DNA of 64,000 nucleotides from Thalia democratica (lineage: Eukaryota): NCBI GenBank assembly GCA_965202585.1, contig OZ241828.1, forward strand, positions 40,796,001 to 40,860,000, given 5' to 3'. The notes under the pieces were generated by a model. It saw only the letters and a program-made list of their open reading frames with translations, had not been told where the DNA came from and ran no database searches. The translations under genes were made by a program, and so were the position numbers. Shown one piece after another: positions 12,783 to 47,800 of this stretch (position 1 is its first letter; every line of letters begins with the position of its first letter).

Positions 12783-13250
12783 TAACAAAACATTGGCAAC
12801 AGTCCAACAGTCCAAAGCTTGGACTTACGTGTGTCATGAGAAAAGCTCAAGTTGACATAAAAGTTAGCTGATACCGCTTCGATCATCAGACCACAAACTT
12901 TAGGTAGACTGAGACTCGGGTTTAGTTTTTATTGAAACTTCCAGTCAGTCACGACCAAAAAAATTTCATTGGTCAATTAACAAATGGTTTTTCACGTTTT
13001 ACCAGGAGTATTTGTTAAAGTGTCTCTGCCAATTGGACAATGTATTACTCGATAATGGCACGGCAACTAGAAATTCTGACATTAATGATCATACCATGAA
13101 ACAGTAGCTTCATAGTAAAATATAACAAACCGTTTGTAGGTTGAAAAATGCAAGTTGTTTTAATTGCAACTAACTAAAGAGTTTAAACAAAAACGAAACT
13201 CAGGTATCAGTCTACTAAAACCTTGTAACTGGTGATCGGAGTGGTTTAAA
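12783..13250. mobile_element. Old inverted-repeat copy of the hammerhead-bearing PLE-like element (ribozyme cores decayed)
   Basis: Both arms align to the 25727-26108 element (e.g. TTCGATCATCAGAC...GGTAGACTGAGAC; AAACCGTTTGTAG...CGAAAC...TCAGTCTAC); non-palindromic centre. Confidence 0.7.
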
Positions 13251-14149
13251 CAAACCTCTTATTTTTTGTTATAGTTTTATGTTTTACTGTTGTTATATAA
13301 TTTAACAATAACTTAAATGTTTTTTGAAGGCTTATGTTTTTAAATATTCTTTTTCCATATTCTTTGTTATATAAATTACCAAGTAAAGTATTCATTAGGC
13401 TTGTATTTTTTGCAGTAAGCTAAAACCTAGACAAAAAAGTAATATCTAATTTTGTTAAGAGGACTTTTCAAACACATATCTTAAAAAACTTCTGCAACGA
13501 TATAAAAAGAAAAAAAGAATTTTTGTAACTAACTTTTTTGAAAATAGTTAATTGTACTTTACATAAATGTTGTTTTTTAAGTTCTACTTACATACTATTA
13601 GAACTTAGTTTTTTCGAACTAATTGTTCGAAAATTTTATTTTTATTTATACTGACATGAAATTGGTCTTAAATTTAGATATTGATAATAATATGTATTTT
13701 AATGAAGTCAAGAGGATAATTCAAAAAGCTTTAAAACTTTATCTATAGTTATTAACTTATATTTACTTAATTCAAACTACAGTAACCTCTTGGAAATATA
13801 TGCACTCATTTGGTTACTCATTCTCGTTTAGTTACGCATTTTAGAACTTTAAAATGACAATCCTAACATTTCAGCATGTAATTAGACTAGTTAAATATTA
13901 TTAATAAAGTTTTTATAACAAATATATTGTTTAAAACAATGATAGAAAATTAAATATTCAATTATTGTCAAAATACTACGTATTATTTCTCACTTATACA
14001 ATTTTTAGCTTTTAGACTAAAAAAATAATTAAACAACTTTAAATATTAGTTTTTTGTTTGAGATGTTACCCATTAAGCATTAAAGTTTTTACGACATATC
14101 CGTTTTAATCTAGAAAAAATATTTTATTACAATTTTCTTGTATCTAAAA

Positions 14150-15067
14150 TTAATCTACCTTTGCACAATATTGTGAGAAGCATTTTCTCGCGCAAGTTTC
14201 GTGATAAACAAGAGTTTCAGGTGTCACAACGAGGGAATCACCAAAACGAAATAAAACATTGCAAAACTGACAAGTTCTTTCTGCAGCATTCCGACATTTC
14301 TCCACGACACGAGAATAAACGATCCTGTCGTGTTTCTCAAAAACACCAAAGTCTGTTGCCGAACAAACAAAGTTTTGGAATCCGAGCTCTGACAAAAGTT
14401 CGTGGGCAACTTGGGGAAACTTTTCTGAGTCGTCTGTTAAGCTCATCAGATTTTTTAAAAGTCTCGAAGTTTTAATAAACAACTTTTTCATCACTAACAT
14501 GTAAAACAGTTTGTAGACTTCCTTAAAAAAATCATTGTCTGTAACACAACCTCCTAACTTTAAAATTGCTGTTTCGAATAAATAAGACACTAATTTATCT
14601 TCATTGATTTTTGTTTCTGAGCAATATTCAAAGTTAGTCGTATTTAAGTAGGCGGGAAATACTTTAAAAATGACCAAGCTACTAATCGTTTTCCTATCGA
14701 AATCGGGCAAAGTTGGCTGTAAAACATCAACTAGCTTGTCCATAACTATTCGGCTGTCGTCAGTTTTTAGTTCTCTGCTTATAATGCTAAACGACAAAGA
14801 GATGTTTTTCGGGACAAATCCATGAAAACTGTTTCTTTTTAAAAATAGAGTAAAATTTTTTAGATCTTCGGTTTCTTTTAAGTGTATCACATCAATGTTT
14901 GACGTAGAACTCAAACACAAACTCGGGTCCGAATCCGAAGTGAGAAATGATGAATTTGAACTGTTTAAAAGCGGGTTAAACTGACCAAAGTCACTGCTGT
15001 CAGCGAAACTTTTTCGCTTTTTGTGGACATTTTTTACTAATTTTATTGATCTTCTTATTTGTTTCAT
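14150..15067 (-). CDS. 305-aa uncharacterised protein with C-terminal degenerate RING (C-x2-C...H-x2-C)
   Basis: 918-bp uninterrupted ORF in very AT-rich DNA, raised GC/CpG; C-terminus CQFCNVLFRFGDSLVVTPETLVYHETCARKCFSQYC aligns to the RING-H2 pattern; could be the last exon of a larger gene. Confidence 0.7.
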   Translation of the reverse strand: MKQIRRSIKLVKNVHKKRKSFADSSDFGQFNPLLNSSNSSFLTSDSDPSLCLSSTSNIDVIHLKETEDLKNFTLFLKRNSFHGFVPKNISLSFSIISRELKTDDSRIVMDKLVDVLQPTLPDFDRKTISSLVIFKVFPAYLNTTNFEYCSETKINEDKLVSYLFETAILKLGGCVTDNDFFKEVYKLFYMLVMKKLFIKTSRLLKNLMSLTDDSEKFPQVAHELLSELGFQNFVCSATDFGVFEKHDRIVYSRVVEKCRNAAERTCQFCNVLFRFGDSLVVTPETLVYHETCARKCFSQYCAKVD

Positions 15068-19305: not shown

Positions 19306-22300
19306 CTAAACGATTTGTAATAATCAAAAAACATCGTTATATGTTTCACGCAAAGTGGTTACAATTAAAGCTATAAAAAGTTTTAGAGTAAACAAACAAA
19401 AAAGTAAATTTAACTGCAACAATTTAAAATTAACAGTTTAAGTTCGGAAGATATTTTTAACTAGCCAAAACTACAGTTTATAAATAAAAAATTATATTAA
19501 AAATTAACTTAAATACACATATATCATAAAACATTAATTCTACTTACAATACACCCTAGCTAAAATATGTGTGAAAATTTTTTATTATGTCTAACCAGTG
19601 CTTTTTTTGCTATACACTGCAAACTTTATTTGCACTAAAATTTTATTTTTCTATAGAGGAATTTATATTTACTGTTGTTAAATAACTTTTATTAGTTTTA
19701 AAATAATTACACTCAATAAAAAACTTCAACTAGAATCTTTGTTATAAAAACAGTTTTTGTTGCACTAAACTGAACATAAAACATAGTACAAAAGGGGCTT
19801 TTGGAAATCGAGCAAGAACAAATTAATATATATTTTAAACAAACATATTCATAATTTGTTGTTTTTATAGATGAGCTGACAACAGGAAAACTAATTATCA
19901 ACAAAACAAAAGTGCTGCTTACCTTTAGGCGCGATTCTCACACCAGCTACTAGCTTCAGCTCGTCGGAAGGCCTCAACTCTATCTTGATGGCGTCTCCGC
20001 TTTTCGCGTCGTTGTCATGGCTACTGAGGGGAGCGGCAACGTAGAAAGGCACATTGTGGTACTTGGCCAGGACTGCGATCTGGTACGTGCCTATTTTGTT
20101 GGCGGTGTCCCCGTTTCTCGCTACACGGTCTGCGCCCACCACTACAGCTGTCAGAATGGTTGTACTTTAGCATTAAAATATTTTTTGCGTTCACATAGTC
20201 AAAGAGTCATAATTACTTCTGTTTGAAACTTATCAAAGAATGCTGTTCGAAACATTTTCAACTTTATTTTACTAGTTTCTTTGAAACAATTTGCTTTTTT
20301 TACCAAAAACATATTTATCAAACATTTTCCTAATACAACCTAACTAATATTAAGAAATATTTATGTCAACTATAGTTACTAGGAAAAACATAAGTTAATT
20401 ACTTATGTGTGTTCTTTTTTTGAAAGTCTAAGAAGAAAATATAAATAGAACAAATATACATATATATATATATATATACATTTTCTCAAAGTTCTTTAAA
20501 TTAAGACTTCTCAAACCAAAACATTCATAATTAAAGTGATATTTCTTCCTTTAAAATGAAATGCATTTTTTATAATAAAATTTAGATAATACAAGAGCAA
20601 TTTCTTTCCAGAGGAAACCTAAATGTGCTAAATATTTTAAACTAAATCACTGAGCTCAATTGTTATACTAACTTACACAAGTTTACATTGAACGAAAATT
20701 TAAACAATTTTGTTGATAATCACTAAATTACATATTAATAATATTATGTAATAACATTATGTTTTGTTTAAAGCAATAGAAATACTAATAATAAAATTTA
20801 ACAAACTTCTAAAACATTAGAATATAATGAAAGCATACAAACTTAATTAATTAAACTCAAACAAAAAAGTTAAACAGCTCGTTATAGAACTCAGTTAAGT
20901 ATGTACTTAAAAACTATTGTTTATTGAGCGTTTAAAAAGTTTGGTCAAAGGACCTGATGTACAATAATACTTTTTGATTATCAAGTCATAGTCCAGGGAA
21001 ACAGTTTAATGAATTGTCCAGGAGAACTAAGTATAAAATTGTTTTCCTAATAAACAATATCAACCTGTTATCTTTTTTTCTTTCATTAATGCTGCTACCA
21101 TACTATCTGCAATCAAACATGAAGGAATTTCATCATGAACTAGCTCATAGGCGGTCAACCTAGAGCCCTGGTTGTAAGGCCTTGTTTCGGTGTGATAAGC
21201 AACTTGCAACACTTTTTTATTATTCAATGACCTAATTACTCCTAAACAATTTTTTATGTAAAGTTGTTTTAATTCATTTAATTTTAAGTTATTTTATAAA
21301 ACTTTGAAACTTTTTGATTAAAAAAAATCTGCATTTTTTTTTTAATCATTTATAAAAACTATAAAAAAGTAATTTATATAAGAGTACTCTTATTTTAGAA
21401 CAAAACTTGTTTTTAATATTTTTACTATCTTTATCCGCACGAAGATTAAAATTCAACTATTGGCTTTTTCTTTAATTTAATCAACTTATTCATATTTAGT
21501 TATCAATTATACAAACTCTTGTACACTGTAGTTAATTCAACAAAATTTTCATAAGTATAGTATTAAATACTTACTTTAGAGCTCATAAAACATTTTTAAC
21601 TTCTATTTAAGTAAAACCTTTCTTAAAGTAGTATAATACGTAGTGTAAAAATATTTAGAAAAATATTTAAAAAAAAAAAATTTCACACTAAAAAAATTTG
21701 AAACTTGGTTATACGTCTTATAACTAATAGGTTTCAAAAGCAATTTATCACAACCTAATGCCGTTCCAAAACCAGAAGTGGCAAGTGTTCCAGTATTACA
21801 ATGAGTAAGAATATTGATTTGAGATTTAGCAAAGTTATCTAATATATGGCACGCTCCGTGATTTCCAATGTTTTTATTTATTTGCAAGTCATCCGACAAC
21901 AACTTTTCACAATATTCAATGACCCTTTAAATAATATTTAGCAGATGGTCAATACTCATCTTTGTTACTTAGTTATCGTATCTAATATTTTTCTTATTCA
22001 ATTACTTTCTCAATCCTAACCAAACCTTAGTCCGAAAACCACAAAACTATCAATATTTTTTAAAACTACCTAGTAGATTTAATTTTGTTTTAAATTTATG
22101 GTTAGTGTAGAATACAGTATACATTAAAAAAAAGTTACAGAGAAAGTAGTTTTATCCAAACCAGTAAAAGTGTTAATATCTTTTCAGATTGCCAAGTTAA
22201 TAAATTGTTTAAATTTAAACTCAAGTTTTTATATCATCCCTAAACTCAGTACAGTACATATATAAAATATCCTCAAGTTTACCTCAAGGTTTTGTTACAA

Positions 22301-25300
22301 AACTAGAATTAAATATTTGTTAAAATTCATAGTATTTTCTCATATAACAGTTTTGTCAACTTTACAACACTAAATAATTTTACTCAGATTCAGTTACTTT
22401 GTGTATTGGTTTATTATAAAACAATGAATCTTCAATTACTCAAGCTAAAACGCTAAAAAAAACAACCAGTCAATTAATAGTAAAGCCAATTAAAAATGTA
22501 ATCAGTGTTTGCATAAATTTGTTGCAATTTTAAGAATTAAGTAAAAATTTAACATTTCAACTCATGTACTTTTAAAAACTAAACACAAAAAAATATAAAG
22601 CAATGTTATCAACTACTTACTTTTCAATAATGTCTTTTGCTGAGCTATTCTTTTGGACCTCACATATTTTACTCAACTCTGACGCTGATGTGTGCATATT
22701 CACTGCAGTTGGTCTTGCCTCAACAAGCTCAGTTGCCCAGCTTTTTATTTTTGAGATCAAATCGTCAGCAGTCATTTCACTAAAACTTTCATCCGACTGC
22801 AATTTGACTGCAACACTCAAGCAACCGACTATGGCTATGGCTGGTGCGCCTCTCACCTGTGAATTGTTATCTTGAAAAACTACAAAAGAAACGAACATTT
22901 TAAATTACATATAACTAATCGTATAAATATTAGAGCTTAACTAAAAAACCTGTTGTTATAAATTTCATTAGAAATAAGGTTTAAAGAAGCTTGTTAAGGA
23001 GTCTAAATTTTATAGTTTATTGAAAACTTAAGAAAAAACAATAAATATATAAAACAGAATAAAGTTTATTCAACTAAATCAATTTTTTATAGCCGGGTTG
23101 AAATAGCTTCCAAGTACTTTATTTCAAAATCCAAAAAAAAAGTACATATATTTTATGCAGCTTTTTGCCACAATCATCAGCTATGTCATTTGAAATAAAT
23201 AAATATATATATATAGTTTATTTTGAAAATTCGATTTAAAAAGAACAGTACATATGTTTCATAAAAACATTTGCTTTGTTTTTTTTTGTTTTAATGTTTA
23301 GCAAAGTGCAATTAAATTTGAACTACAGTTGATAATGAAAAAAAAAAATTAAAGACACTGTGACGTAATTATTAAATGTTGTAGAGGACAAAATTAATCT
23401 TTCTTGCAAACAAACAACTAAAACTTAAAAAACTGAAAATAAGTGACTGTAAAATTAAATACTTTAAAACTTAATAAATTTTAAGAGAATCTTTTTCATA
23501 TTCCGACAAGACGATATAAATTCACTTCTCTTGTTTAAGCAACCCTCTTTTTTCAACGCATACACAGCGGCCATTGACTCTTTTAAGCACAGCCTAACAA
23601 ACAGGGTTATTACCATCTGCTATAGGCTGTGTTCTTTTTATAACCTCCCAGGTTAATTTAAAATCAATGTTTTAGCGCTTTAGGTCACAAACGTACGTTG
23701 AAAGCTCAGTCTCATTTTCATATAGAACCTTTAATAGATTTTTTATGGTTAGCATACCGGAATCTGAACTGAGTTGAGCAAAACCGATGCAGAACTTTTT
23801 CTTAAGGTCAGAGTTAACTGTTGCCCTGTAAATAATGTCTTCCGAACGGCAATTACCCCTTTTCAAATTATATTTGCAGTCACCAGCGCAATTACATTGA
23901 TTCTGGATTAGATTACTTTTGTTTAATGTTTTTTGGTTATGTGACTTAATTAATCTCTCCAAACTAACCGTAAATGGATTATCTTTGTTTAAAATGCATT
24001 TTTACTAGATTTATAAATTCTCTGCACAGCCTATAGCAGATGATAACAACCCTGTTTATAGGCTGTGCTCTAAGAGTCAACGGCCGCTGTGTATGCGTTG
24101 AAAAAAGAGGGTTGCTTAAACAAGAGGAGTGAATTTATATCGTCTCGTCGGAATATTAAAAAGTTTCTCTTAAAATTTATTAAGTTTCAAAGTATTTAAT
24201 TTTACAGTCACTTATTTGTGTTTTTGTAAATTTTAGTTGTTTGTTTAGAAATCAGATTAATTTTTCCACTGAAAATTTGTCCTCTACAACATTTAATAAT
24301 TACGTCCTAGTGTCTTTTGTTTTGTTTTTTGTATAACCTTCGTATTAATGTTCTTTAATGTTTTAAATGCTTAATTTAATGAAATACTTAAAACTTATAA
24401 AATTACTCTTAAAAACAGACTGTTTATTTTATCTATTTAGTTTGTGTTCAAAACATGTTTTTTAAGTTTATTTTTGCAAATAGATTTACTTTAAAATAAT
24501 TTACAACTACAGATTTGTTTGTGAGAAAAAAGTTTAAGATCTCTACTTCGTAGGAGAACAAACATATTTTTATTGTCTCAAAAATTCATTAAAAAACTAA
24601 GTTTTGCTCAAAGAGCTTGTCAATGCACCTAACAAATAACTCTTATTTAAGTAGAACTTAAAAGCCCCTTTATAAAATTATTAAAATAAATCTAATTTAG
24701 TAGAAAAGAATGGAGACACATTTTTTTTTTAATTCACATACTTTTTTACTACATAGCTGTTTATCATTAACAATTAGTGCCTTATGCATTAAGTACGTAA
24801 AAAATTCAAAATACTTGCTTATTAAACTAAACATTTTCTTAGTCCATAATTTTTTATATAATTTTCGCATGGTTTTTCTCTATATCAAGTAGGAGATAAC
24901 ATATTTTAGTAAAAACGCTTAACAGAAAATAACCAGCATTTTCATCAAACATTGTTCATAAATATTTTTTCTGCAAAACTTTATAACACCAGGCCTTTTA
25001 AATATTTGGTTAATTTTTCTAGAAGTTTGATGTATGAAAATATCATCAACGGACCGCAGGTATTCAAAACAGTTGTATAAATATAAACAAAAATAATAGT
25101 TTAATTAAAAATATGTAATAATAAATCTATAAACCTTGTTAATTTAATTAGTTAAGATCCTAATTGTAAATTTTTGTCACAAAACTCTTTTTTTATTTTT
25201 CCTAGTTGAAAAGTACATTGCGAACCGCATACTCTTACTTTGACCCACGGGCTGCCATTTGCTGGCTCCTCTTTTTAAGAACAAATGATATTTTTAACTT

Positions 25301-26484
25301 AATTTAAAGGTTTTCAACACTAATTTTATATAACACTTTTTAATTATGAACAAAACTATGATCAATTTATTGACGCAAATGTAAAACTTTAGAACAAAAC
25401 TGTTCATAACTTATTAATTTAAACACTTCAATCACTTCAAACTAGTGTTTAGTAGTTTAGAGTTTCTCAAAAAGCACACATACAATATGCATAACTAAAT
25501 ACTTAGTTCTTAATGCTACGTTTCAATTTCGTTAGTTTTTTTTTTGAATTGAAAATAATAATAATTTGGTTTACTTGCATTGCTTTTTAATACATTTTTT
25601 AGGAACTAGTTGCATTTTAAATTACAAAAATTGTCAGTGATCAATGCACTCTTTAGTTAGTTTAAACTATTCTGTTAAATTAACCTCCTGTAGCTAAGGT
25701 TTTTTTTATTAATTAAATAAGTCAATAATAGGGTTGATCACGCCAATTCGATCATCAGACTACAAGTTTCGGTAGACTGAGACCGGTTTCGTCCTTATTA
25801 GGACTCATCAGTCAGTCACAACCGAAAAACCTGTAGTCATCAATCTACAAACGGTTTATCATGCTTTCACATGAATCAACCACTTGCTAGCAATGATCAG
25901 TGACGTCACTGATCATTGCTAGCAAGTGGTTGATTCATGTGAAAGCATCATAAACCGTTTGTAGATTGACGACTACAGGTTTTTCGGTTGTGACTGACTG
26001 ATGAGTCCTAATAAGGACGAAACCGGTCTCAGTCTACCGAAACTTGTAGTCTGATGATCGAATTGGCGTGATCAACCCTATTGTTAAACTTGAGCTTATC
26101 TCACGTTGTTAAATAAGTCAATTTTTTCTATTTAAACAAACTTTTAAAAGCTTACAAACACATTTGATAAACAAAAATTTTAGTAGTTTTCAAGAAAAAA
26201 GATTTACAAATAGTTGCCATGACCATCAAACTTGTTTATTTAAAACTTATAAATATCCTACAGCTTAATTTAACTTCAAGTAAAACTTAGCATTTGCGTT
26301 AAAAGTCCTTTCCCTTATTTACCATAAAGTTAGTAAACGCGTTGCAATATACCTTCATAGATTTAATAGCATCAGCGGCCTCTGATACTTCTCTGATCTG
26401 TATAAACTCCGATGTTGTTGGAAGTAACAACTGATTTAAAATTTTTAGACTTCCTTCGCTGTAATCAATAGCCTTTAAAACCAT
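19196..26484 (-). CDS. MRI1: Methylthioribose-1-phosphate isomerase, 6 coding exons, 349 aa
   Basis: Exons 26353-26484, 22621-22856, 21755-21924, 21065-21241, 19923-20147, 19196-19305 total 1050 nt with GT-AG introns and consistent phases; motifs [64 protein letters not shown]. Confidence 0.95.
19923..20147 (-). CDS. MRI1: MRI1 exon 5
   Basis: [40 protein letters not shown]...; CTGACAG acceptor, GTAAGC donor. Confidence 0.95.
21065..21241 (-). CDS. MRI1: MRI1 exon 4
   Basis: GVIRSL...[37 protein letters not shown]; not in the supplied ORF track. Confidence 0.92.
21755..21924 (-). CDS. MRI1: MRI1 exon 3
   Basis: [23 protein letters not shown]...[20 protein letters not shown]. Confidence 0.92.
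22621..22856 (-). CDS. MRI1: MRI1 exon 2
   Basis: [17 protein letters not shown]...ARPTAVNM; TTCACAG acceptor, GTAAGT donor. Confidence 0.93.
23351..24317 (-). mobile_element. 5'-truncated PLE fragment (Cys-rich linker plus GIY-YIG endonuclease, frameshifted) with inverted duplication of its 3' end
   Basis: Minus strand, after frameshift repair: [16 protein letters not shown]...IIYRATV...FCIGF(C)[14 protein letters not shown]...ETELSTYV...LTWEVIK...CRLCLKE...[12 protein letters not shown]; arms 23351-23631 and 24025-24317 are reverse complements. Confidence 0.85.
25775..25817 (-). ncRNA. Minimal type I hammerhead ribozyme (minus-strand mirror copy)
   Basis: Exact reverse complement of 25992-26034; lies on the MRI1 pre-mRNA strand. 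Confidence 0.85.
25992..26034 (+). ncRNA. Minimal type I hammerhead ribozyme
   Basis: GACTGA-CTGATGA-GTCC-TAATAA-GGAC-GAAA-CCG-GTC-TCAGTC: stem I GACTGA/TCAGTC (extendable by TTTCGGT/ACCGAAA and GACTACA/TGTAGTC), full core, stem II GTCC/GGAC, very short palindromic stem III ACCGGT; predicted cleavage after C26028. Confidence 0.88.
26353..26484 (-). CDS. MRI1: MRI1 exon 1
   Basis: [22 protein letters not shown]...DAIKSMK; donor GTATAT. Confidence 0.9.
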
Positions 26485-27670: not shown

Positions 27671-30079
27671 TTATAGTTTAAGTTGAAAGATTGGGTCATC
27701 TACATTTCCTTCAGCAACCAAAGTTTCTTTCCGGTCATTTATATGTCTAATTGTGTTGTCGAAATGCATCTTAATCATTTCATTTTCGTTTTCATCTGAA
27801 ATTTCAGGAAGCTCTTCGCGAATTTTCTCAATAAGTTGACCAATGATATCATATGTGATCGTGTCACAACCATGCTCCACAAAATAAAGGTACTTGTTAA
27901 GAATTTCAACAAACAGTTGGAGTTGCATTGCTGATTCCATGCATTGATTTGCTGTTTTCACGGCTTTTTTCAAGCACTCTGCAACTCTTTTTCCGTCTCT
28001 CATTTCCTCTCCACCAGTTTCTTGTGTTTTTCCTGACCAAAAAAGATGAGCAACGTGAGCAACTGCACGACACTGATCAGGTTTCTTTAGCAGCCTGGAT
28101 GCAGCATGAGCACATTGAGTGCGCAGTGGGGCATGATTCTCTTCACTGAAGCATGTACACTTTTCTACAGTGCTAACAAAAAGCAACACAGCTGCTAACT
28201 GCGCTCTACTGTCATTAATGTCTTCTTCATAAATGGAAAAAGCTTGTGACATAAATTCATATGCTATAGCTTCGTGATTGTTAAAGCCAAGATGTGAAAC
28301 TGTTAGAGCTCCTTGCAAAAATAAGCGGAATGGTAGATCTGCTTGATCCAAATGCTGGCATAAACTGTTGATTATAGATCGACAAGTTTCAAATAGCTTC
28401 TTACACTTCTTTTGCCAGTTTTCATTTTCATCTTTACTCTCTTTGTATCTAGAAGCTAGCTTATATAGAGCAAATACAACAGCTGGCAAAGTTATGACCA
28501 TTCTCTTACTTCCGCCTTTTTCGAAGTGAGATATAGCCTTTTTCAGAATAAAGTAATGCTCGTCAGGACTACTGGAGAACAACAAATGAACTAACCTACC
28601 CACTAAACTTTGCTCTTCAGCAAATGTTTCTTCGTCAAACTCTCCATTTGGTTGGTCAGCTTGATCTTGTATCAAAACTGCAACCAACAACATTAAAGCA
28701 TCTGTAAGTTCTGGAGTATCAATGACAGTTTTATTTTCTAAAATATTACTTACTACATTTGTAGCCATCTTTTGACGAGCGTTATAATCAAAGTGATCAA
28801 ACAAAGGCCCATAGTTTTCAAGTTTCAAAACAGTAAGAATGTTGTTATAAACGTCTATAGGCATTTGAAGCAAATTTGACATCTCTCTGCACAAAACAGT
28901 CCCACTATTTACAGTATCTGTACCCCTTTTACCAAAAACTTCAAGAGTTGCACCTAATACCTTATCAACATAATCAATCCTATCTGGATAGCATTTGAAA
29001 GCCAGGTTAATAACAGCAGCTTGCATAGACACTATATCTTCTAACTTCATTGATGGTCGTGCAGAAATAATGTTTGAGACTTGCTTATTAAAAATGTCAA
29101 AAAGTTTTATATCATCTGGAATGCCATTTGAATGGTCCCTTTGAACAAAAAGAGTAAGACGTTCAACCATAGCAATTATAGTATTTTTCACATTTACGTT
29201 TGGATGGAGATTAGCACATGCTTGAAGAAAGCTATCCAGAGTTTGAAGATGAAATTCATCTGGAAAAACTTGAATTATACATTCCATCAAATACTCCTGA
29301 GCAATTGCATCGTTGCACTTAACAACTTGTTCAAGAACTCTTGGCAATACAATTTTTTTGTAGTTGTTGACATCAACACCTTCAAGCTGACTCAACCTAA
29401 CAAGATTAGTACCAACTAAAATCCTTAGCTCTTGTCTTTCTTTTTCACGCTTTTCTCTATCCTTACTGTGGCCTAAATGCTGCATTCTTACCCAAAGCTT
29501 GTTCATTTCAGAAAAGTTTTGGAGTATGAATTCAATAGAATTGTTAACATCTTGCTTCATAGATTCTTTTTCATCTTCATCTGCTTCTGGGTCAATGTCA
29601 GGAAGAACATTTTTTGTGCACTGAAGTAAATAGTTACGCAAAAATAAACCTCTTAAAGGATGCTGAACTCCTCTACACATTTCAACTAGATCTTCAAGAA
29701 TAACTTTACAGGATTTTGACTTGACATTTATGTATACAACACCCATTGTTACAAGCAAATACAGTCTTGGAATAATATTTCCAGCATACTGTACAACTTG
29801 GTACAAGTCTGTTTCAAATTGATTTTTTTTAACTTCTTCTATCAGGTAGTTTTGTAAATGTCTGAGTTCATCACAGATACTCATATATAGCTCATAATAG
29901 TTCTTAGGAGTAAGGTTTGATGTTCTTAATTCTTTAATCATGTCTGATGCATGTTTCAGTCCTTCCAAAACCTTGTTTTTGTCAAGATCTCTCTTCATTT
30001 GAAAACTTTCCATTTTCACATGCTGTACAGCCTCATCAAGCAATCTTTCTTGCTCTTCACTGTTCATTTGTCCACTCAT
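27671..30079 (-). CDS. VPS35: Vacuolar protein sorting-associated protein 35 (retromer core), intronless, 802 aa
   Basis: Full-length ORF with ELRTS-like N-terminus, [88 protein letters not shown]. Confidence 0.97.
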
Positions 30080-31089: not shown

Positions 31090-31119
31090 GACTTGGTTTT
31101 GTCCTTAGGACTCATCAGG
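31090..31119 (-). ncRNA. Degenerate hammerhead core (GAAA mutated to AAAA)
   Basis: Minus strand CTGATGA-GTCC-TAA-GGAC-AAAAC-CAA-GTC; stem I cut off by the adjacent MITE. Confidence 0.45.
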
Positions 31120-31533
31120 CAGGGGTGCACGACTATTCAAATTCGGACAATTCAAGTTCTTAAAAAAAAATTGAAACAGCTACAAATAAAAAATTAAAGT
31201 ATATCTTTCAAATATAAAAAATAAATATGTAGGTCATATTAATATCTACAAACCCTTTTTTTCATTTTGCAAAACATTAAATATTTTTTAGATATGGCTT
31301 AAATAAAGTAAAAAGTATAGTTATTTTTAGTAATTTTAAAATATCTTGAAAAATATTTTACATTTTGCAAAAAAGAAAAAAGTGGCTTGTAGATATTAAT
31401 AAGATCTACATATGTATATTTTATTTTTTTCAAATTGATATTACTTATTGAGATATAGTTTTTTAAATAATTTTTTAAGAATTTGAATTGTCAAAATTTG
31501 AGTTGTCCAAATTTGAATTGTCATGTAACCAAT
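31120..31533. mobile_element. MITE (hAT-like ends)
   Basis: Left CAGGGGTGCACGACTATTCAAATTCGGACAATTCAA, right TTGAGTTGTCCAAATTTGAATTGTCATGTAACC; no TSD recognised. Confidence 0.55.
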
Positions 31534-38006: not shown

Positions 38007-39365
38007 ACTACAAAAAAGTATAGTGTTATATGTTTTATAACTCGATGAGATCTTAATACTTATTTATAAAAGAAGCAATAAAAAAGCTAAAAGGTAATAA
38101 AACAGTTAATCAAGTTACTGTATATAAATGATTAAGCTTTTTAATTCAAAAAAAAAAGTATTTTATTATACTTTTGTTAACTTTTAATCAAGTCAAAAAA
38201 AATTTATACAAAAAATTAGTTTAAGAAAAAAAATAACAAAATTAAAAATGTTTTCAAAAAAAGTTTAACTTTTAAAAATTACTCTAAAGTACTTTTGAAA
38301 AATTAATTAAAAATTTTTGCAAAAATTTTATTTCTTAATTTATTAGATTAGTTGGTGATACAAAATTGGCCTAAAATTTTTAACTGAAATAGTTACTTAT
38401 ACATTTTTATTTTTATTAACGAATTAAATTTTTTAATTATAACTTTTAATTTAACACGCAAATTTTAATACAGGTAGAGTTAAGGTTGAATAAAAGAATC
38501 CACAACAGAGAAAGCTTAACACATTATGTATGTTTTAACTTTAGTATTTCATGCTAATTTTTTAAGATTTATTCAAAATAGCGACTCTAAGCAAGACCAT
38601 CTTTTGCTAAATATGCTTCGAATTATTTTTGTAGGCAAGCTTTTAAAAGATTTTTTATAAAGTATAAATGATTTATACTCTTATAAAACAATTCATTAAC
38701 GAAAAAAGATTTGATAAATTTGCATATTAAACACGTCTTTTTGTACTTACACACCAACTAAATGTACTTCTTTTTATAATACTTAAAAGTTAGACAAGAG
38801 AAAATTTCTTATAAAATATTTAAACATTGCTATGAGAAAATTTATGAGTCTAAATTAATTTTTTAGCTCTAAAGCTTAATTTAAAATCTTATTTAAATTA
38901 TTAAGTATTTTTATATCAATAACTAACAATATTCTTCATAAAAGTATATTATGCGCTAAGCACTTGTTAATTTTACTTTATAAGTAAAATAACTTAAAAA
39001 ACTCTTCAACTGTAATTTTAATTCTGAAAAGGAAAAACATATATACATGAAAAATGTTTAACTAGTCTCAGTAAAAAAAACAAGACAAAACATATCGCGT
39101 TAAATTAACAACATAACTTTTACATACACAAATAATATCTTAGTATTTATTCTTAGAAGTGTGAGATTATTTTAAACTTAGATTGTCTAGGTGAAAAAAA
39201 TATTTTATAGAATCAAGTCTTTTAAAAATACTTTGAAAAGATTTTTTATAAAGTATAAATGATTGTAGGGTCGGCAAACTGTAGCCCACGGGCCAAATTC
39301 AGCCCTAAAAGCCAATTTCTGCAACCCGTGAAGTACTTATAGCTCAAAGCATACTTTTTTAAATA

Positions 39366-39512
39366 CAGTCAACGAAAACATCGGCGAAAGCCTACAAAGC
39401 CGAAGCCTGGAATTTTGTGTGTTGTGAGACAAGCTCAAGTTTAACAAAGATTTGATCATACCAAGTCCATCATTAGACCACAAGCATTTGATATGAGACC
39501 GGTCTCGTCATT
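39366..39512 (-). mobile_element. 3' fragment of the hammerhead-bearing element family
   Basis: GTGAGACAAGCTCAAGTTTAACA...CATTAGACCACAAG...TGAGACCGGTCTCGTC matches the tail and half the ribozyme of 25727-26108, and the 12783 copy. Confidence 0.6.
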
Positions 39513-41367
39513 GTTCTAAAAGTTTAAAAGTCTAAAAAAAATTTTAAAGTTCTACAGTATTTTTTACAACCAAACAAATTGATATATACGGTATCTGTAA
39601 ATAAATAAAAACTGTCTTTTAATTATTTTAATTCTTTAAAATCAAAATTTTAAATGTTTGTTAAAAGTTTTTATGCAAAAAACTATGATTTTTTTTATGA
39701 AATTGTAAATATTTTTATAAAATTTAAGCTTTTTTCAAAGTTAAAATATTTTGTGGTTTAATCGTTGTTTTTTGATTGTACACAATCAATCTGAATCCAG
39801 TTTTTTTTTTCGAAAAAAACTAAATTCTGTTAGTTTTATTTGCTAAAAGTCTCAATTTTATAATTTTTTAATAAATCAGTGTCTAATCTTAAAGTGTTTT
39901 GAAACTATTATATTAATAATAAATACAATATTTTAATGGCTAGCTAACTTGGATTTAGTGGCAATAAACCATTTAATTTTGTCTTAAAAGAGTCTTTGAA
40001 ATAATAGTTACTATAAATAAAGTTATTTTGTCGAAAATTAGGTTAGCAAATCATCATTATATATTGTAGAACCTTTTAGAAACGATATGAAAATTAAATA
40101 TATATAAAAGTAACACTAGCAAGTATTATTGAATCGGTATCTATTTTTTGTTAGATTTATATTACTAACAACTAAAACTATAAAGATTATAAAATATTTT
40201 CAATATGAAAAACTTAACTCTCACTTTTGTTTAAAACATAAATTAAAAAGTTCATTTTATTAGGTTTGCAAATATTTAAAAATATTATCTAGTCGTTAAA
40301 ATCAATAGAAATTATTGTAATATATGTAAAATAAAAATATATTCTACTGCATCTGGCAAAAATTAAAATGTTTTATTTTTTGTAACTCTTTGTATTTTTA
40401 ATACAAAGTAAAAAAATATATATTAAAATACTTTATTCATGTTTTTCATATCTTTGTAATAGAAAAATATTTATAAGCACATAAGCTTATATAAAAAACA
40501 AGTCAGTGATAACAGTTTTGATGAAATGTTTATTTTTGACCACGTCACAGTCGTATTCTTCTTTATATCATTCTATGTTGAGTTATTGTTTTAATGATTT
40601 AATCACATTTATCAGTATAAGATATTAATATCATAAAGTTTTTCTTAGGCCTAAATATTTTATTTTTTTTTTATTTTTTTTTTATAATTTCAAAAAATTG
40701 TTTTAACTTTTTTCTGTCATTAAAATTAGTAGAAAGCCATTATTTAGGTATTTAGATTCAATTTTTATTATCTTTCAAAATTAACAAAAAATAAGAGGAT
40801 TTCCTTCAATTCAATTTAACATTAAACTGTTAAGAATTATCTATCTCTACTAAAAACTAGTTTGGATAAAAAAGTCAGACGAAGCCTTTAAAGATAGAAT
40901 TCAAAGAAAACTTGTGGCCAATTTTTTGTAATTTTATCGCGAGCTAAGTAACCGTAATTCAATATAAAGTTAGTCTCGTCGTTTTAAGTACTATGTTTTT
41001 CTACACTATTATCATAATGCGTCTATTTTTTTAAATTAATATTTAGTTAAATAAACCAGTGGTTTTTAAAACCTGTGCTTAGTAAACTATTGGCAAACTA
41101 CTTCAGTGCACTATGTACAATAAAGATACGTACTAACTATAAATAACACTAGTTTTTAAAGCTATATAGATTTAAGTGTCTTATTAATAGAAATGAAAAA
41201 CTGGTTACTTACGTAAAGAATTTTGCTTTCCAAAAAAAAAGAATTCAAAAGGTGTTATACCGAAATAAAACTTCTGTGCACATTGAAATAATTTCTATTC
41301 AAACAATGTGCAAAGATGCATACTGTGCTAAGATCACTACAGTAAACTAAAATACGTCAATCTAGTA

Positions 41368-44881: not shown

Positions 44882-47800
44882 GTAAAATTAGAATTGTTTA
44901 AATTTTTGTATAATTTTTTGGGGAATTTTGATTTTTGTAAAATTTTTTCATTCTGCAATAAAGGTTGAGAACACTTTATAATTTATTATAAAAGTCAAAT
45001 TTCAACTAAATTAAATGTTAATTGTATCATTTAGATACTTTATTATAGTTAACAAAATGAAGTTTGTTTTAAATTTTCAGTTTTACCAGTTTTTAAATTT
45101 TTCTTATACTAAATACATCTAGCATTGATTTAAATGAGTTAAATTTCTACAAAATATATAAAAAACTTGGGAACAGGTCAAATATGCACAAAAAGACACT
45201 TTTGCACAAACACAATGTTGCACAAAGGGACATTTTTGCACTAAGGGCACTTTTGCACAAAGACACTTTTGCATGATATGTCACTTTTGCACTAGAATTA
45301 AAAAATATAAATAAAATACAATGATAAATAAAAAAATAAAAGTAAAATAATAAAAATTTACTCACTAAGGGTGAGGGTTAGGTTGGGGGTAACATCGATA
45401 TTAAAAATAGAAAACAAATTAAATTAATAAAAAAAGAAGATTAATTGATAAATTTTCAATCTGTGCAAAAGTGTCTTCGTGCAAAAATGACTCCTTGTGC
45501 AAAAGTTTCTTTGTACAAAAATGTCCCTTTGTGCACATTTGACACCTACCCAAAAAAATCTGCCTAGTTTGCAACGACTTAGGCTTTTTTTTTGAAACAG
45601 CTGTAAGTTGTTACAAATAGTTTTTAAGGCCATATAAGTTTAAAATATACTTACAACTTAGTTACATATAAATTCTCCTGTAAAATTAGAGGGCAATGCC
45701 ATTTAGTCTAACTTTTTGAAAAGTTTACAATATTATATATATTTGTTTCCTAATTTTTTCTAAACACAATCTCTCAACGAATAAAATAAATTAAAAGTTT
45801 AGAAATAATATGGAGTTTTTAAGTATATTGCTGATTATAAACTGCTAAAAGAAATATAATATTTACTAATTAGCACTTTTGCTGTTTTAGTTTGTACTAA
45901 AAAACTAACCTGTTAAAAACTATAACTTAGCAATATTTAAAATTCTTTAAATTAGTTATGCTGTAATAAGTAGGGGTAACTAGAGTAAACACCTTTAAAC
46001 TGAAATCAACTTTAAAAAACAAAATTGACTCCAATTTAGCTTGAGTTGATGTGCTTTCAATTTTAAGATTAAAAAGTTTCAATTCAATTTTATAGTTAAG
46101 ATTTTTTTTTAATTACAATATAATTTATTTTTATAAAAACATTTTAATCTTCATATAGTAGTATAAAGTTTAAAAAATTGTTATAAATTTGCTATGAATA
46201 TAGTGCTATCTTGAAAAATTATTAATAAGCAAGAATTTTAATTATATGAAATAAGTAAACCTAATTTAGAGAAGAACAATTTTATAAAGCTGATGAAAAT
46301 AGCAACGAGTGATGTGCAGTTTAATTTCAACAATACAATTTACAGTCAGATAGACGGCGTAGCCATGGGGTCACCTTTGGGTCCTACTCTAGCGAATATT
46401 TTTATTGGATATTTAGAATCCAAAATTGCTGACGACTTGTCTTCACAAGTTGTCTACATAAGATACGTGGACGATTGTTTGGTCATATCCAAAACAGAAA
46501 GTGAAAATGAAGATATTTTTCAAAAATTAAACTCTTTACATAAAAAGATTTCTTTTACTAAAGAAGTAGAAGAGAACAATCAGCTGCCATTTCTGGATAT
46601 ATTAATAATAAAAGATAAAACAAGCTTCTTAACGAATGTTTATAGAAAAACAACTTTCACTGGGCAATACTTACACTACCAATCGTTTTGTAGCAAGAAA
46701 CGAAAAGTAAATCTAATCAAAACGCTGTACCATAGAGCATACAGAATCTGTTCGAAAGAATTACTTCATTCAGAGGTTGAGAGAATAAAAGAAATATTAA
46801 TAAAAAATGGGTACCCACCAGATTTGATTAAGAAGGTGATAAAATCACACCACAATAACATAAATCAACCTAGACTATTTGGACCGGAGAAGTTCCCAGC
46901 AATATTAAAATTACCTTATATTGGAGAAAAATCACGAGTATTTGAGAGCAAACTAAAAGACTTAACAAAAACATCTTACAATCAAGTGCTTCCAAGAGTT
47001 ATATTTCTTTCAAAATCTTTATTAAAAGTGCAGTTGAAGGACCCGATACCAGACCAAGACAAAAGTTGTGTAGTATACAAGTTTAATTGCTCTTGCGAAA
47101 AGAGCTATATTGGGCAGACCTCTAGGCACTTAAAAACCAGGATAAAAGAACATCTACCTGCTTGTGTATTGAAATTCATCGAACAAGAACCTGAAATAAA
47201 GACAATAGCAACAAAAAACGCAGCAAAAAGATCTTCAGTTGCAGAACATCTAATAAATAATAGAGATTGTGCTAGGAAATATGACATATCCAGATTTAGA
47301 ATAATCCATCATTGCAATAGTGTGTTTGATCTCGTGAAGTTGGAGGCTATCTCTATATTTTTGGAGAAACCAGAGCTGTGTAAACAGAAGGAATTTTATT
47401 ATAAAGTGTCTTTATTTAGTTAAATTATCTATTTTTTATCCGTTAGTAGTATTTGAGTTTAATTATTTATTACTTTACACTGATTATTTATTGTGCTTAT
47501 TACTTTGTTAGTTTTAACTTTTTGTGTTTTTGTTTGAAAACTTATTCACAGTTTTAGAATTGTTCTACTGTTAAGTTCTGACGAAAAGTAGTGTAATACG
47601 TATAAACTATCACAGAAAACTTGAGAGAGTGTTTTATTTATTTGTTTTTGCATTAAATATGAATTAGCTGATAATGTTTGAAGTATTAATAAGCAAGAAA
47701 TTAGATAAAAACCAAAACTTTTAAGAAACCTGAATTCTGATTTGTTTTTTTTACATATATTATTTAATTGAAGGCTCTTTTGTCTGCTTAAACCATAAGT

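Follow-up and report, generated by a model that had tools for sequence, protein, structure and literature searches.

The 64,000-nucleotide stretch of the tunicate Thalia democratica analysed here (the window; GenBank assembly GCA_965202585.1, contig OZ241828.1, positions 40,796,001 to 40,860,000) carries, in intron 1 of MRI1, the gene for methylthioribose-1-phosphate isomerase, a 396-bp insertion made of two nearly perfect inverted arms that meet without a loop and bear a hammerhead ribozyme motif on each strand. Such a structure raises the question of how it came to be there and whether it does anything for the gene or for itself. We think it likely that the insertion records the recent retrotransposition of an abundant hammerhead retrozyme and shows the insertion signature of Penelope-like elements (PLEs); because it carries that signature, the integration machinery was probably a PLE reverse transcriptase (RT) with its GIY-YIG endonuclease. 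The copy is what Penelope-type retrotransposition ordinarily leaves behind and does not represent a novel kind of element.

Layout and age of the insertion

Two partial copies of an abundant hammerhead repeat of about 335 nt, placed head to head, make up the insertion, which is flanked by a target site duplication (TSD). Positions within the repeat are given on a natural copy from locus L027, taken as its reverse complement, in which the unit ends at 335. On re-reading the window we saw again the layout reported in a first-pass annotation made from the sequence alone, namely a 14-bp TSD, two 178-nt arms with 2 mismatches and a centre at TGAC/GTCA. The features are the following.

25713-25726, unstranded: left copy of the TSD, TTAAATAAGTCAAT, a 14-bp, 100% direct repeat of which a single copy is kept at the empty site in sample X3
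25727-25904, minus strand: left arm, antisense, family unit 312 to 131, its outer end at the recurrent start site A
25759-25829, minus strand: minimal type I hammerhead (Rfam Hammerhead_HH9), predicted cut after the C opposite G25781
25901-25908, unstranded: symmetry centre TGAC/GTCA, that is, TGACGTCA, an 8-bp palindrome native to the unit (131-138)
25905-26082, plus strand: right arm, sense, unit from the centre to 312
25980-26050, plus strand: minimal type I hammerhead (Rfam Hammerhead_HH9), predicted cut after C26028
26083-26105, plus strand: family part of the tail, unit 313-335, at the right end only
26106-26108, plus strand: TTG, 3 nt without a match in the unit
26109-26122, unstranded: right copy of the TSD, TTAAATAAGTCAAT, a 100% match to the left copy
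Reference unit (L027 copy, sense): TGACGTCA at 131-138, CUGAUGAG at 228-235, predicted cleavage after 258

No nucleotide separates the arms, and they differ only at the pairs 25839/25970 and 25860/25949. The left arm is 97% identical to the natural 335-nt unit, and the right arm together with 23 nt of tail runs in sense from unit 131 to 335. Both arm-to-unit alignments extend across TGACGTCA and overlap by its 8 nt, so the absence of a loop is explained by a junction placed on an 8-bp palindrome that belongs to the unit itself. The tail had been described as 26 nt of unique sequence; most of it (26083-26105) is ordinary family sequence, and TTG alone is unmatched. The junction CTCACG+TTG is unique genome-wide, and its last three nucleotides may be untemplated or may be a remnant of the family's second start site, C (unit 52-54), left after the tail hairpin was skipped. 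At 23 (+3) nt, the window copy's tail is shorter than the ~75-80 nt usual in the family.

The insertion is genuine and young. At both outer junctions, contigs of run X1 (25400-25753 and 26076-26450) agree fully with the assembly, and a 5.7-kb contig of run X3, an independent sample with another organism code, joins 25712 straight to 26109. The join corresponds exactly to the empty site and keeps a single TSD copy, in flanks that differ at 1 of 655 bases (99.8% identical); an empty site was among the things that the first-pass annotation had proposed to look for.

Both arms derive, with truncation at the 5' end, from a tandemly repeated non-coding unit of ~335 nt, a retrozyme of the kind without long terminal repeats (non-LTR). 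The 801-Mb genome holds thousands of near-identical family copies. A genome search with the 335-nt family gave 48 scored matches at 94-100% identity, from 1685 first-look candidates, and one with a 328-nt subfamily, which began from 2634 candidates, gave 166 at 96-100%, the majority of them at 98-100%. Tandem arrays, which had been suggested as something to search for, were found: direct repeats spaced at 335 or 328 nt, the spacing that defines the unit. The unit has a GC content of 44% and is non-coding, its longest ATG open reading frame (ORF) being 57 amino acids (aa), and 46 intact hammerhead cores were found in the sampled family loci. The family thus resembles the metazoan non-LTR retrozymes (PMC7229834; 10.64898/2026.07.22.740005), whose unit is likewise a non-coding, low-GC sequence of ~330 nt with a type I hammerhead, arranged in anything from dimers to multimers and flanked by TSDs longer than 4 bp. 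Of the features used to recognize retrozymes, the family shows a non-coding unit within 170-400 nt, tandem organization, a type I hammerhead, low GC (0.44) and a TSD above 4 bp (14 bp in the window copy, median 13 in the family). Unlike those retrozymes, the window copy is head to head and not tandem, and inverted arrangements go unmentioned in the description of animal retrozymes by Cervera & de la Pena 2020 (PMC7229834), as judged by a word search of the full text.

Words of the family also occur in marine metagenomes. Four marine metatranscriptome runs (X14, X24-X26) contain 24-65% of the sampled words of one family tandem array, and one metatranscriptome contig runs from the unit end into the unit start, as DNA carry-over or a multimeric linear RNA could produce as well as the circular monomer RNA that, with a linear form, is expected of a retrozyme. 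These data suggest that the retrozyme family is expressed in wild animals, with DNA carry-over as a possible alternative source. A phage database search with one arm gave no match, a result that is uninformative.

The first-pass annotation had also claimed an intact hammerhead on each strand, with the minimal stem III of PLE and retrozyme ribozymes, and this is borne out by a match to HH9 (RF02275, clan CL00010) on both strands and by direct reading of the core. The match scores 39.4 bits (E 1.4e-8 locally, 1.7e-6 over the 64-kb window), below the gathering score of 52, and the shortfall arises because the stem III loop is absent. Rfam accordingly gives no match in the window at the gathering threshold; the hammerheads surface only under an E-value threshold, at which no others were found in the 64 kb besides the two arm motifs. 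The core is complete on both strands (CUGAUGAG / GUCC-loop-GGAC / CGAAAC / CGGUC^U), with GUC as the cleavable triplet and the conserved CUGAUGA ... GAAA residues, an extended helix I with internal loops, a GUCC/GGAC helix II, and a helix III cut down to ACC/GGU, the palindromic ACCGGU, with a loop of 0 nt. Minimal hammerheads that act as dimers were reportedly described by Lunse et al. in 2017. From its modelled structure, a loop-less helix III of 3 bp is expected to form only between two motifs and not in cis. In the minimal hammerheads of PLEs and amphibians, which share the canonical core and the palindromic ACCGGU, a second copy is needed for helix III (PMC4209133, PMC7229834); the window locus differs from them in having one sense motif per strand and no partner in cis.

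The Penelope signature across the family

PLE insertions contain an adjacent inverted, 5'-truncated copy, and one of their ends bears a tail (Craig et al. 2021, PMC8557442). Purified PLE protein from Anolis cleaves and extends both target strands in vitro (Frangieh et al. 2024, PMC11167929), reverse transcription starting at two adjacent internal RNA sites with the tail as the stretch between them, and the hammerhead is dispensable for insertion (PMC11167929). Animal retrozymes, for their part, have been proposed on phylogenetic grounds to be non-autonomous PLE derivatives (Li et al. 2026, bioRxiv 10.64898/2026.07.22.740005). The window locus and 38 further loci show the first part of this signature, an inverted, 5'-truncated copy that abuts a sense copy, and in 35 of the 39 a tail at one end only is bounded by two start sites, the window ends lying at unit 312 and 335. 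As in PLEs (PMC8557442, PMC11167929), the TSD varies in length and the target is AT-rich, two recurrent start positions match the two sites of RT initiation, and both target strands were apparently extended. The differences from PLE insertions are that the unit has no RT or endonuclease ORF and no detectable similarity to the sampled PLE copies, that the family tail measures ~75-80 nt against 30-40 nt in PLEs (the window tail being only 23 (+3) nt), and that both window arms are shorter than one unit.

These statements rest on the dissection of 39 inverted insertions, 19 from the 335-nt family and its relatives and 20 from the 328-nt subfamily. Clear TSDs numbered 35 (median 13 bp, mode 14 bp), in AT-rich targets. 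The outer ends cluster at two places, site A (unit ~302-322, mostly 304-313) and site C (~47-67 nt into the next unit). One end at A combined with the other in the tail zone was seen in 35 of the 39 (P ~2e-7 against a coin flip), a pair of A ends in none, and both ends in the tail zone, resembling a C/C pair, in one (L010). The exceptions include two insertions with a non-C end at 275 or 285 and one, L014, with an ill-defined right arm of 22 nt ending at unit 203. Simple, non-inverted insertions end mostly at C, and the family also contains single 5'-truncated copies and direct arrays. By hand tally, the head-to-head layout accounts for ~60% of young loci of the 328-nt subfamily. The earlier suggestion that the family repeatedly integrates in inverted form is therefore supported, by the 39 insertions and by this share of young loci; such integration is not special to this element, being a published hallmark of PLEs (PMC8557442, PMC11167929). 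The idea of a retrotransposed, non-coding hammerhead element with a TSD, primed at or near its tail, also stands.

In contrast to the outer ends, the inner junctions, where the arms meet, lie at varied positions. Inverted microhomology of at least 3 nt was present in 9 of 20, where ~1 would be expected (P 2e-7), and the remaining junctions contain 2-6 nt of filler. Some positions recur: among the 20 junctions of the 328-nt subfamily, an arm stops at unit position 1 in five and at 183 in three, and in the 335-nt family together with locus L032 seven arm ends fall at unit 131-135 in 335-nt numbering (L001 twice, L009, L011, L023 and L032 twice). L032, an independent insertion, shares the TGACGTCA centre; its outer ends lie at A and C, its TSD measures 13 bp and each of its arms spans 2.6 units. 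A genome-wide search for symmetric head-to-head junctions found 25 loci centred on ACCGGT, 2 on TGACGTCA and 1 on TGATCA, with reversed-pattern controls at 0; one more, imperfect match to a TGACGTCA-type symmetric junction lies at C7:3220026. The ACCGGT-centred pattern is TAGACTGAGACC abutting GGTCTCAGTCTA with at most 1 mismatch (for example, G000:C2:34043280, C5:1137826 and C6:60859952), and it had no match in the metagenome scan. The excess at ACCGGT could mean that templates were copied as hammerhead-paired dimers, or simply that short complementary DNAs (cDNAs) are commoner.

Sites A and C are complementary heptamers, GAUCAAC and GUUGAUC, at about unit 298-305 and at 51-57 of the next unit in L027, and the L032 unit is alike. 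In the predicted fold of both subfamilies, the A:C pair closes a tail domain of ~85 nt that contains a CGAAAGUC...GACUUUCG hairpin. The fold was no more stable than those of shuffled sequences (z = -0.8), and for this reason we treat the A:C helix only as a lead.

PLEs are themselves plentiful and young in this genome. A search for a PLE RT with a GIY-YIG endonuclease gave more than 10000 first-look candidates; identity between copies is 95-100%, and open frames are intact up to 827 aa, including an 813-aa ATG ORF in locus L057, with a C-terminal YIGQT..R..EH motif. Judged from these sequences, the enzyme is present and has recently been active. PLE copies also occur as head-to-head pairs. Two autonomous copies face each other in L057 (3489-5672 and 6533-8716) with 2184-nt arms that are 100% complementary and 860 nt between them, including a 224-nt tandem repeat, and this pair is the same inverted layout at the scale of a full element. 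The only similarity to the unit near the sampled PLEs lies in small pieces of retrozyme that have inserted close by, in L043 and L057. Tiny fold-backs of related hammerhead families stand beside PLE copies at these two loci: the one at L057 3042-3198 has arms of ~110 and 42 nt, both truncated 3' of the ribozyme, and the one at L043 355-585 has a decayed ribozyme (GACAAAAC).

Two cDNAs or one

The target was cut with a 14-nt stagger, as the TSD shows. In the sequence of events that we favour, both nicked target strands would then prime reverse transcription of retrozyme RNA, from site A for one strand and from within the tail zone for the other, in agreement with the in vitro behaviour of the Anolis PLE. 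The two cDNAs would then pair at the self-complementary TGACGTCA, each serving as the second-strand template for the other, and a loop-less palindrome would result. Since both cDNAs have the same polarity, such pairing would be restricted to self-complementary sequence.

LINE-1 is said to use a comparable route, the twin priming reportedly proposed by Ostertag & Kazazian in 2001. LINE-1 products share with the present insertion the flanking TSD, the combination of an inverted 5' part with a direct 3' part, and, on the reading favoured here, a microhomology junction that joins two cDNAs, one from each target strand. They differ in that the second priming here would use a fixed internal RNA site, A, in place of chance annealing, in that poly(A) is absent here, and in that a PLE RT with its GIY-YIG nuclease is the probable enzyme here.

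The alternative that survives best, which we nevertheless consider unlikely, is the one favoured in the first-pass annotation: a single tail-primed cDNA stalls at TGACGTCA, snaps back and copies itself, so that the other arm is its copy. Such self-copying would account for the equal extent of the arms apart from the tail, in the window copy and in L032 alike, and for a left arm lying wholly inside the range of the right one, and the palindromic centre would be able to nucleate a 2-bp stem closed by a 4-nt loop. An 8-nt palindrome is, however, a very weak intramolecular primer, and a self-copy would have no reason to stop 23 nt short of the end, exactly at the recurrent start site A (unit 312). 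The arms also differ where both alleles already exist in the family. At 25860/25949 the right arm has C, an allele present in 43 copies genome-wide, and the left arm has the majority G. Twenty genomic copies carry the window's ACAGG variant, a few bases downstream, and the C allele is found in only two of them, the right arm and one other; both arm haplotypes therefore pre-exist in the family, which disfavours snap-back. That other copy, at C2:23348024, was considered as the source and rejected: it is the sole other copy with the right-arm haplotype, but is itself an inverted insertion with 5 differences. The second difference between the arms, on the left one, is a CpG to TpG change that is unique genome-wide and is most simply a later mutation. 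Finally, the family includes nine or more further inverted insertions that are not explicable as self-copies. L010, L011, L015, L016 and L029 contain sequence absent from the partner arm, and in L062, L064, L066 and L073 the arm that ends at site A is longer than the tail arm.

Several observations weigh against priming by two target strands and against the PLE attribution. The view that reverse transcription proceeded from both strands is drawn from the positions of the ends in the sequence, and the tail end of the window copy (unit 335 plus TTG) is atypical, the usual position being site C. At both loci centred on TGACGTCA the arms are equal apart from the tail, as self-copying likewise predicts. 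Palindrome length alone does not set the junction, because the unit's 10-nt palindrome TTGCTAGCAA has no symmetric junctions genome-wide. The centre of the window palindrome has the support of the assembly alone, k-mer contigs being unable to cross it. Among 25 loci of two PLE families (L036-L060), no autonomous PLE sharing the unit sequence was found by blastn or nhmmer, and no hammerhead at E <= 0.01.

A wider reading also suggests itself, which we advance tentatively and which may well prove wrong: the family might be a genome-scale in vivo record of PLE-type reverse transcription, with coupled extension of the nicked strands from A and C, cDNAs meeting at palindromes, chiefly at the helix III sequence ACCGGU in preference to the longest palindrome, and RNAs copied as hammerhead-paired dimers. 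On the modelled fold, sites A and C would then be the two strands of one 7-bp helix closing the tail domain. If this were true, hairpin loci could also act as sources of double-stranded RNA against the family. The pairing of A with the tail zone, the junction microhomology and the palindrome-centred junctions are testable in vivo counterparts of the 2024 in vitro PLE result. Until now, the case for a link between retrozymes and Penelope has been built mostly on co-occurrence and phylogeny in vertebrates; the present locus ties hammerhead retrozymes to Penelope-type integration in a tunicate. On its own, the window locus is probably an ordinary insertion, dead on arrival; its value is as a clean and dated example, with a perfect TSD, an empty allele elsewhere and arms that differ by one family polymorphism.

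The host gene, the hairpin and other features of the window

The insertion lies ~230 nt into intron 1 of MRI1, a gene on the minus strand, and so does occupy a host intron; the first-pass annotation had spoken of a host pre-mRNA. The downstream exons of the gene match PF01008.

19891-26484, minus strand: MRI1 gene, at least 5 exons, intron 1 of ~3.4 kb
26350-26484, minus strand: MRI1 exon 1, in which aa 1-45 align to human MRI1 (4ldq, E 2.5e-6)

A full transcript of either strand is predicted to fold into a 178-bp hairpin at -335 kcal/mol, against -65 for one arm, and by this calculation masking of the ribozyme by its own antisense would be thermodynamically trivial. The idea that the insertion thereby silences its own ribozyme is unnecessary, because a hammerhead with a loop-less, 3-bp stem III needs a dimer anyway; by analogy with other minimal hammerheads, a transcript with a lone motif is expected to show almost no cleavage activity, regardless of the sequence that comes before it. 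The window copy also lacks unit 1-55, the hairpin-containing tail domain beside which reverse transcription of the family normally starts. With one partnerless hammerhead per transcript, its own antisense and no unit 1-55, the copy is probably inert.

It is very improbable, for the same reasons and others, that the insertion is a selected intronic RNA device, whether an antisense-silenced ribozyme or a precursor of hairpin RNA or small RNA directed at the family or at MRI1. The size and stability of the predicted hairpin, its place only ~230 nt into intron 1 and weak Rfam matches to microRNAs (miRNAs) might be taken to point that way. However, the insertion is absent from the X3 sample and hence is not conserved, a monomeric hammerhead of this kind is expected to lack activity, and the RNA contigs match the family and not the flanks or centre of the window locus. 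The miRNA matches lie far below gathering, and any perfect hairpin yields such matches. A miRNA gene at 25846-25959 was accordingly rejected, the matches to MIR4227 (60 bits), MIR1515 and others, all far below gathering, being generic hairpin matches. For genome annotation, fold-backs of this kind are to be read as transposon scars, and not as ribozyme switches or miRNA genes.

An artefact of sequencing or assembly, for example a fold-back chimeric read built into the contig, is a still weaker explanation, and we give it little credence. Perfect palindromes are a familiar artefact of long reads, and contigs gave no confirmation of the centre; against this, the palindrome is short and has unique sequence with a perfect TSD on both sides, X1 contigs cover both outer junctions, X3 has the matching empty site, and the same architecture recurs at dozens of other loci. 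Movement of a DNA-level fold-back element or miniature inverted-repeat transposable element by a transposase, with the arms as terminal inverted repeats, can be set aside almost entirely despite the appearance of an inverted repeat flanked by a TSD, for each arm is a truncated portion of a tandemly repeated unit, the presence of a tail on just one side makes the ends asymmetric, neither junction positions nor arm lengths are constant between copies, the same family gives simple 5'-truncated copies and direct arrays, and a variable TSD of 13-14 bp is atypical of cut-and-paste families.

Three further features of the window relate to the retrozyme or to PLEs.

12837-13000, minus strand, and 13021-13260, plus strand: old relative, an inverted pair at 70-74% identity with decayed hammerheads
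39358-39515, minus strand: old simple copy at 78-80% identity, unit 240-335 plus 1-66, 5'-truncated inside the hammerhead
46293-47423, plus strand: 5'-truncated PLE, the last 376 aa of an RT and GIY-YIG ORF, 54% identical to the 813-aa ORF of L057

In the old pair, the outer end of the antisense arm is at unit 333, with a tail, and that of the sense arm is at unit 312, that is, at site A. The relatives proposed earlier at 12.8 kb, in the same inverted layout, and at 39.4 kb, as a simple copy, are thus genuine, and the one at 31.1 kb reduces to a weak match of 28 nt (31095-31122). Copies of the window PLE at 95-100% identity are common in the genome. The first-pass annotation had named two PLE ORFs in the window that share no sequence with the insertion. 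The sampled PLE ORFs indeed share none, and just one of the two was confirmed as a PLE; the 305-aa ORF at 14150-15067 on the minus strand was rejected as one, being not PLE-like and without a family match. Elsewhere in the window, the minus strand at 27671-30079 carries an uninterrupted Vps35 ORF of 802 aa (PF03635, E 2e-286); the neighbouring genes have introns, and the ORF may be either an intronless gene or a retrogene.

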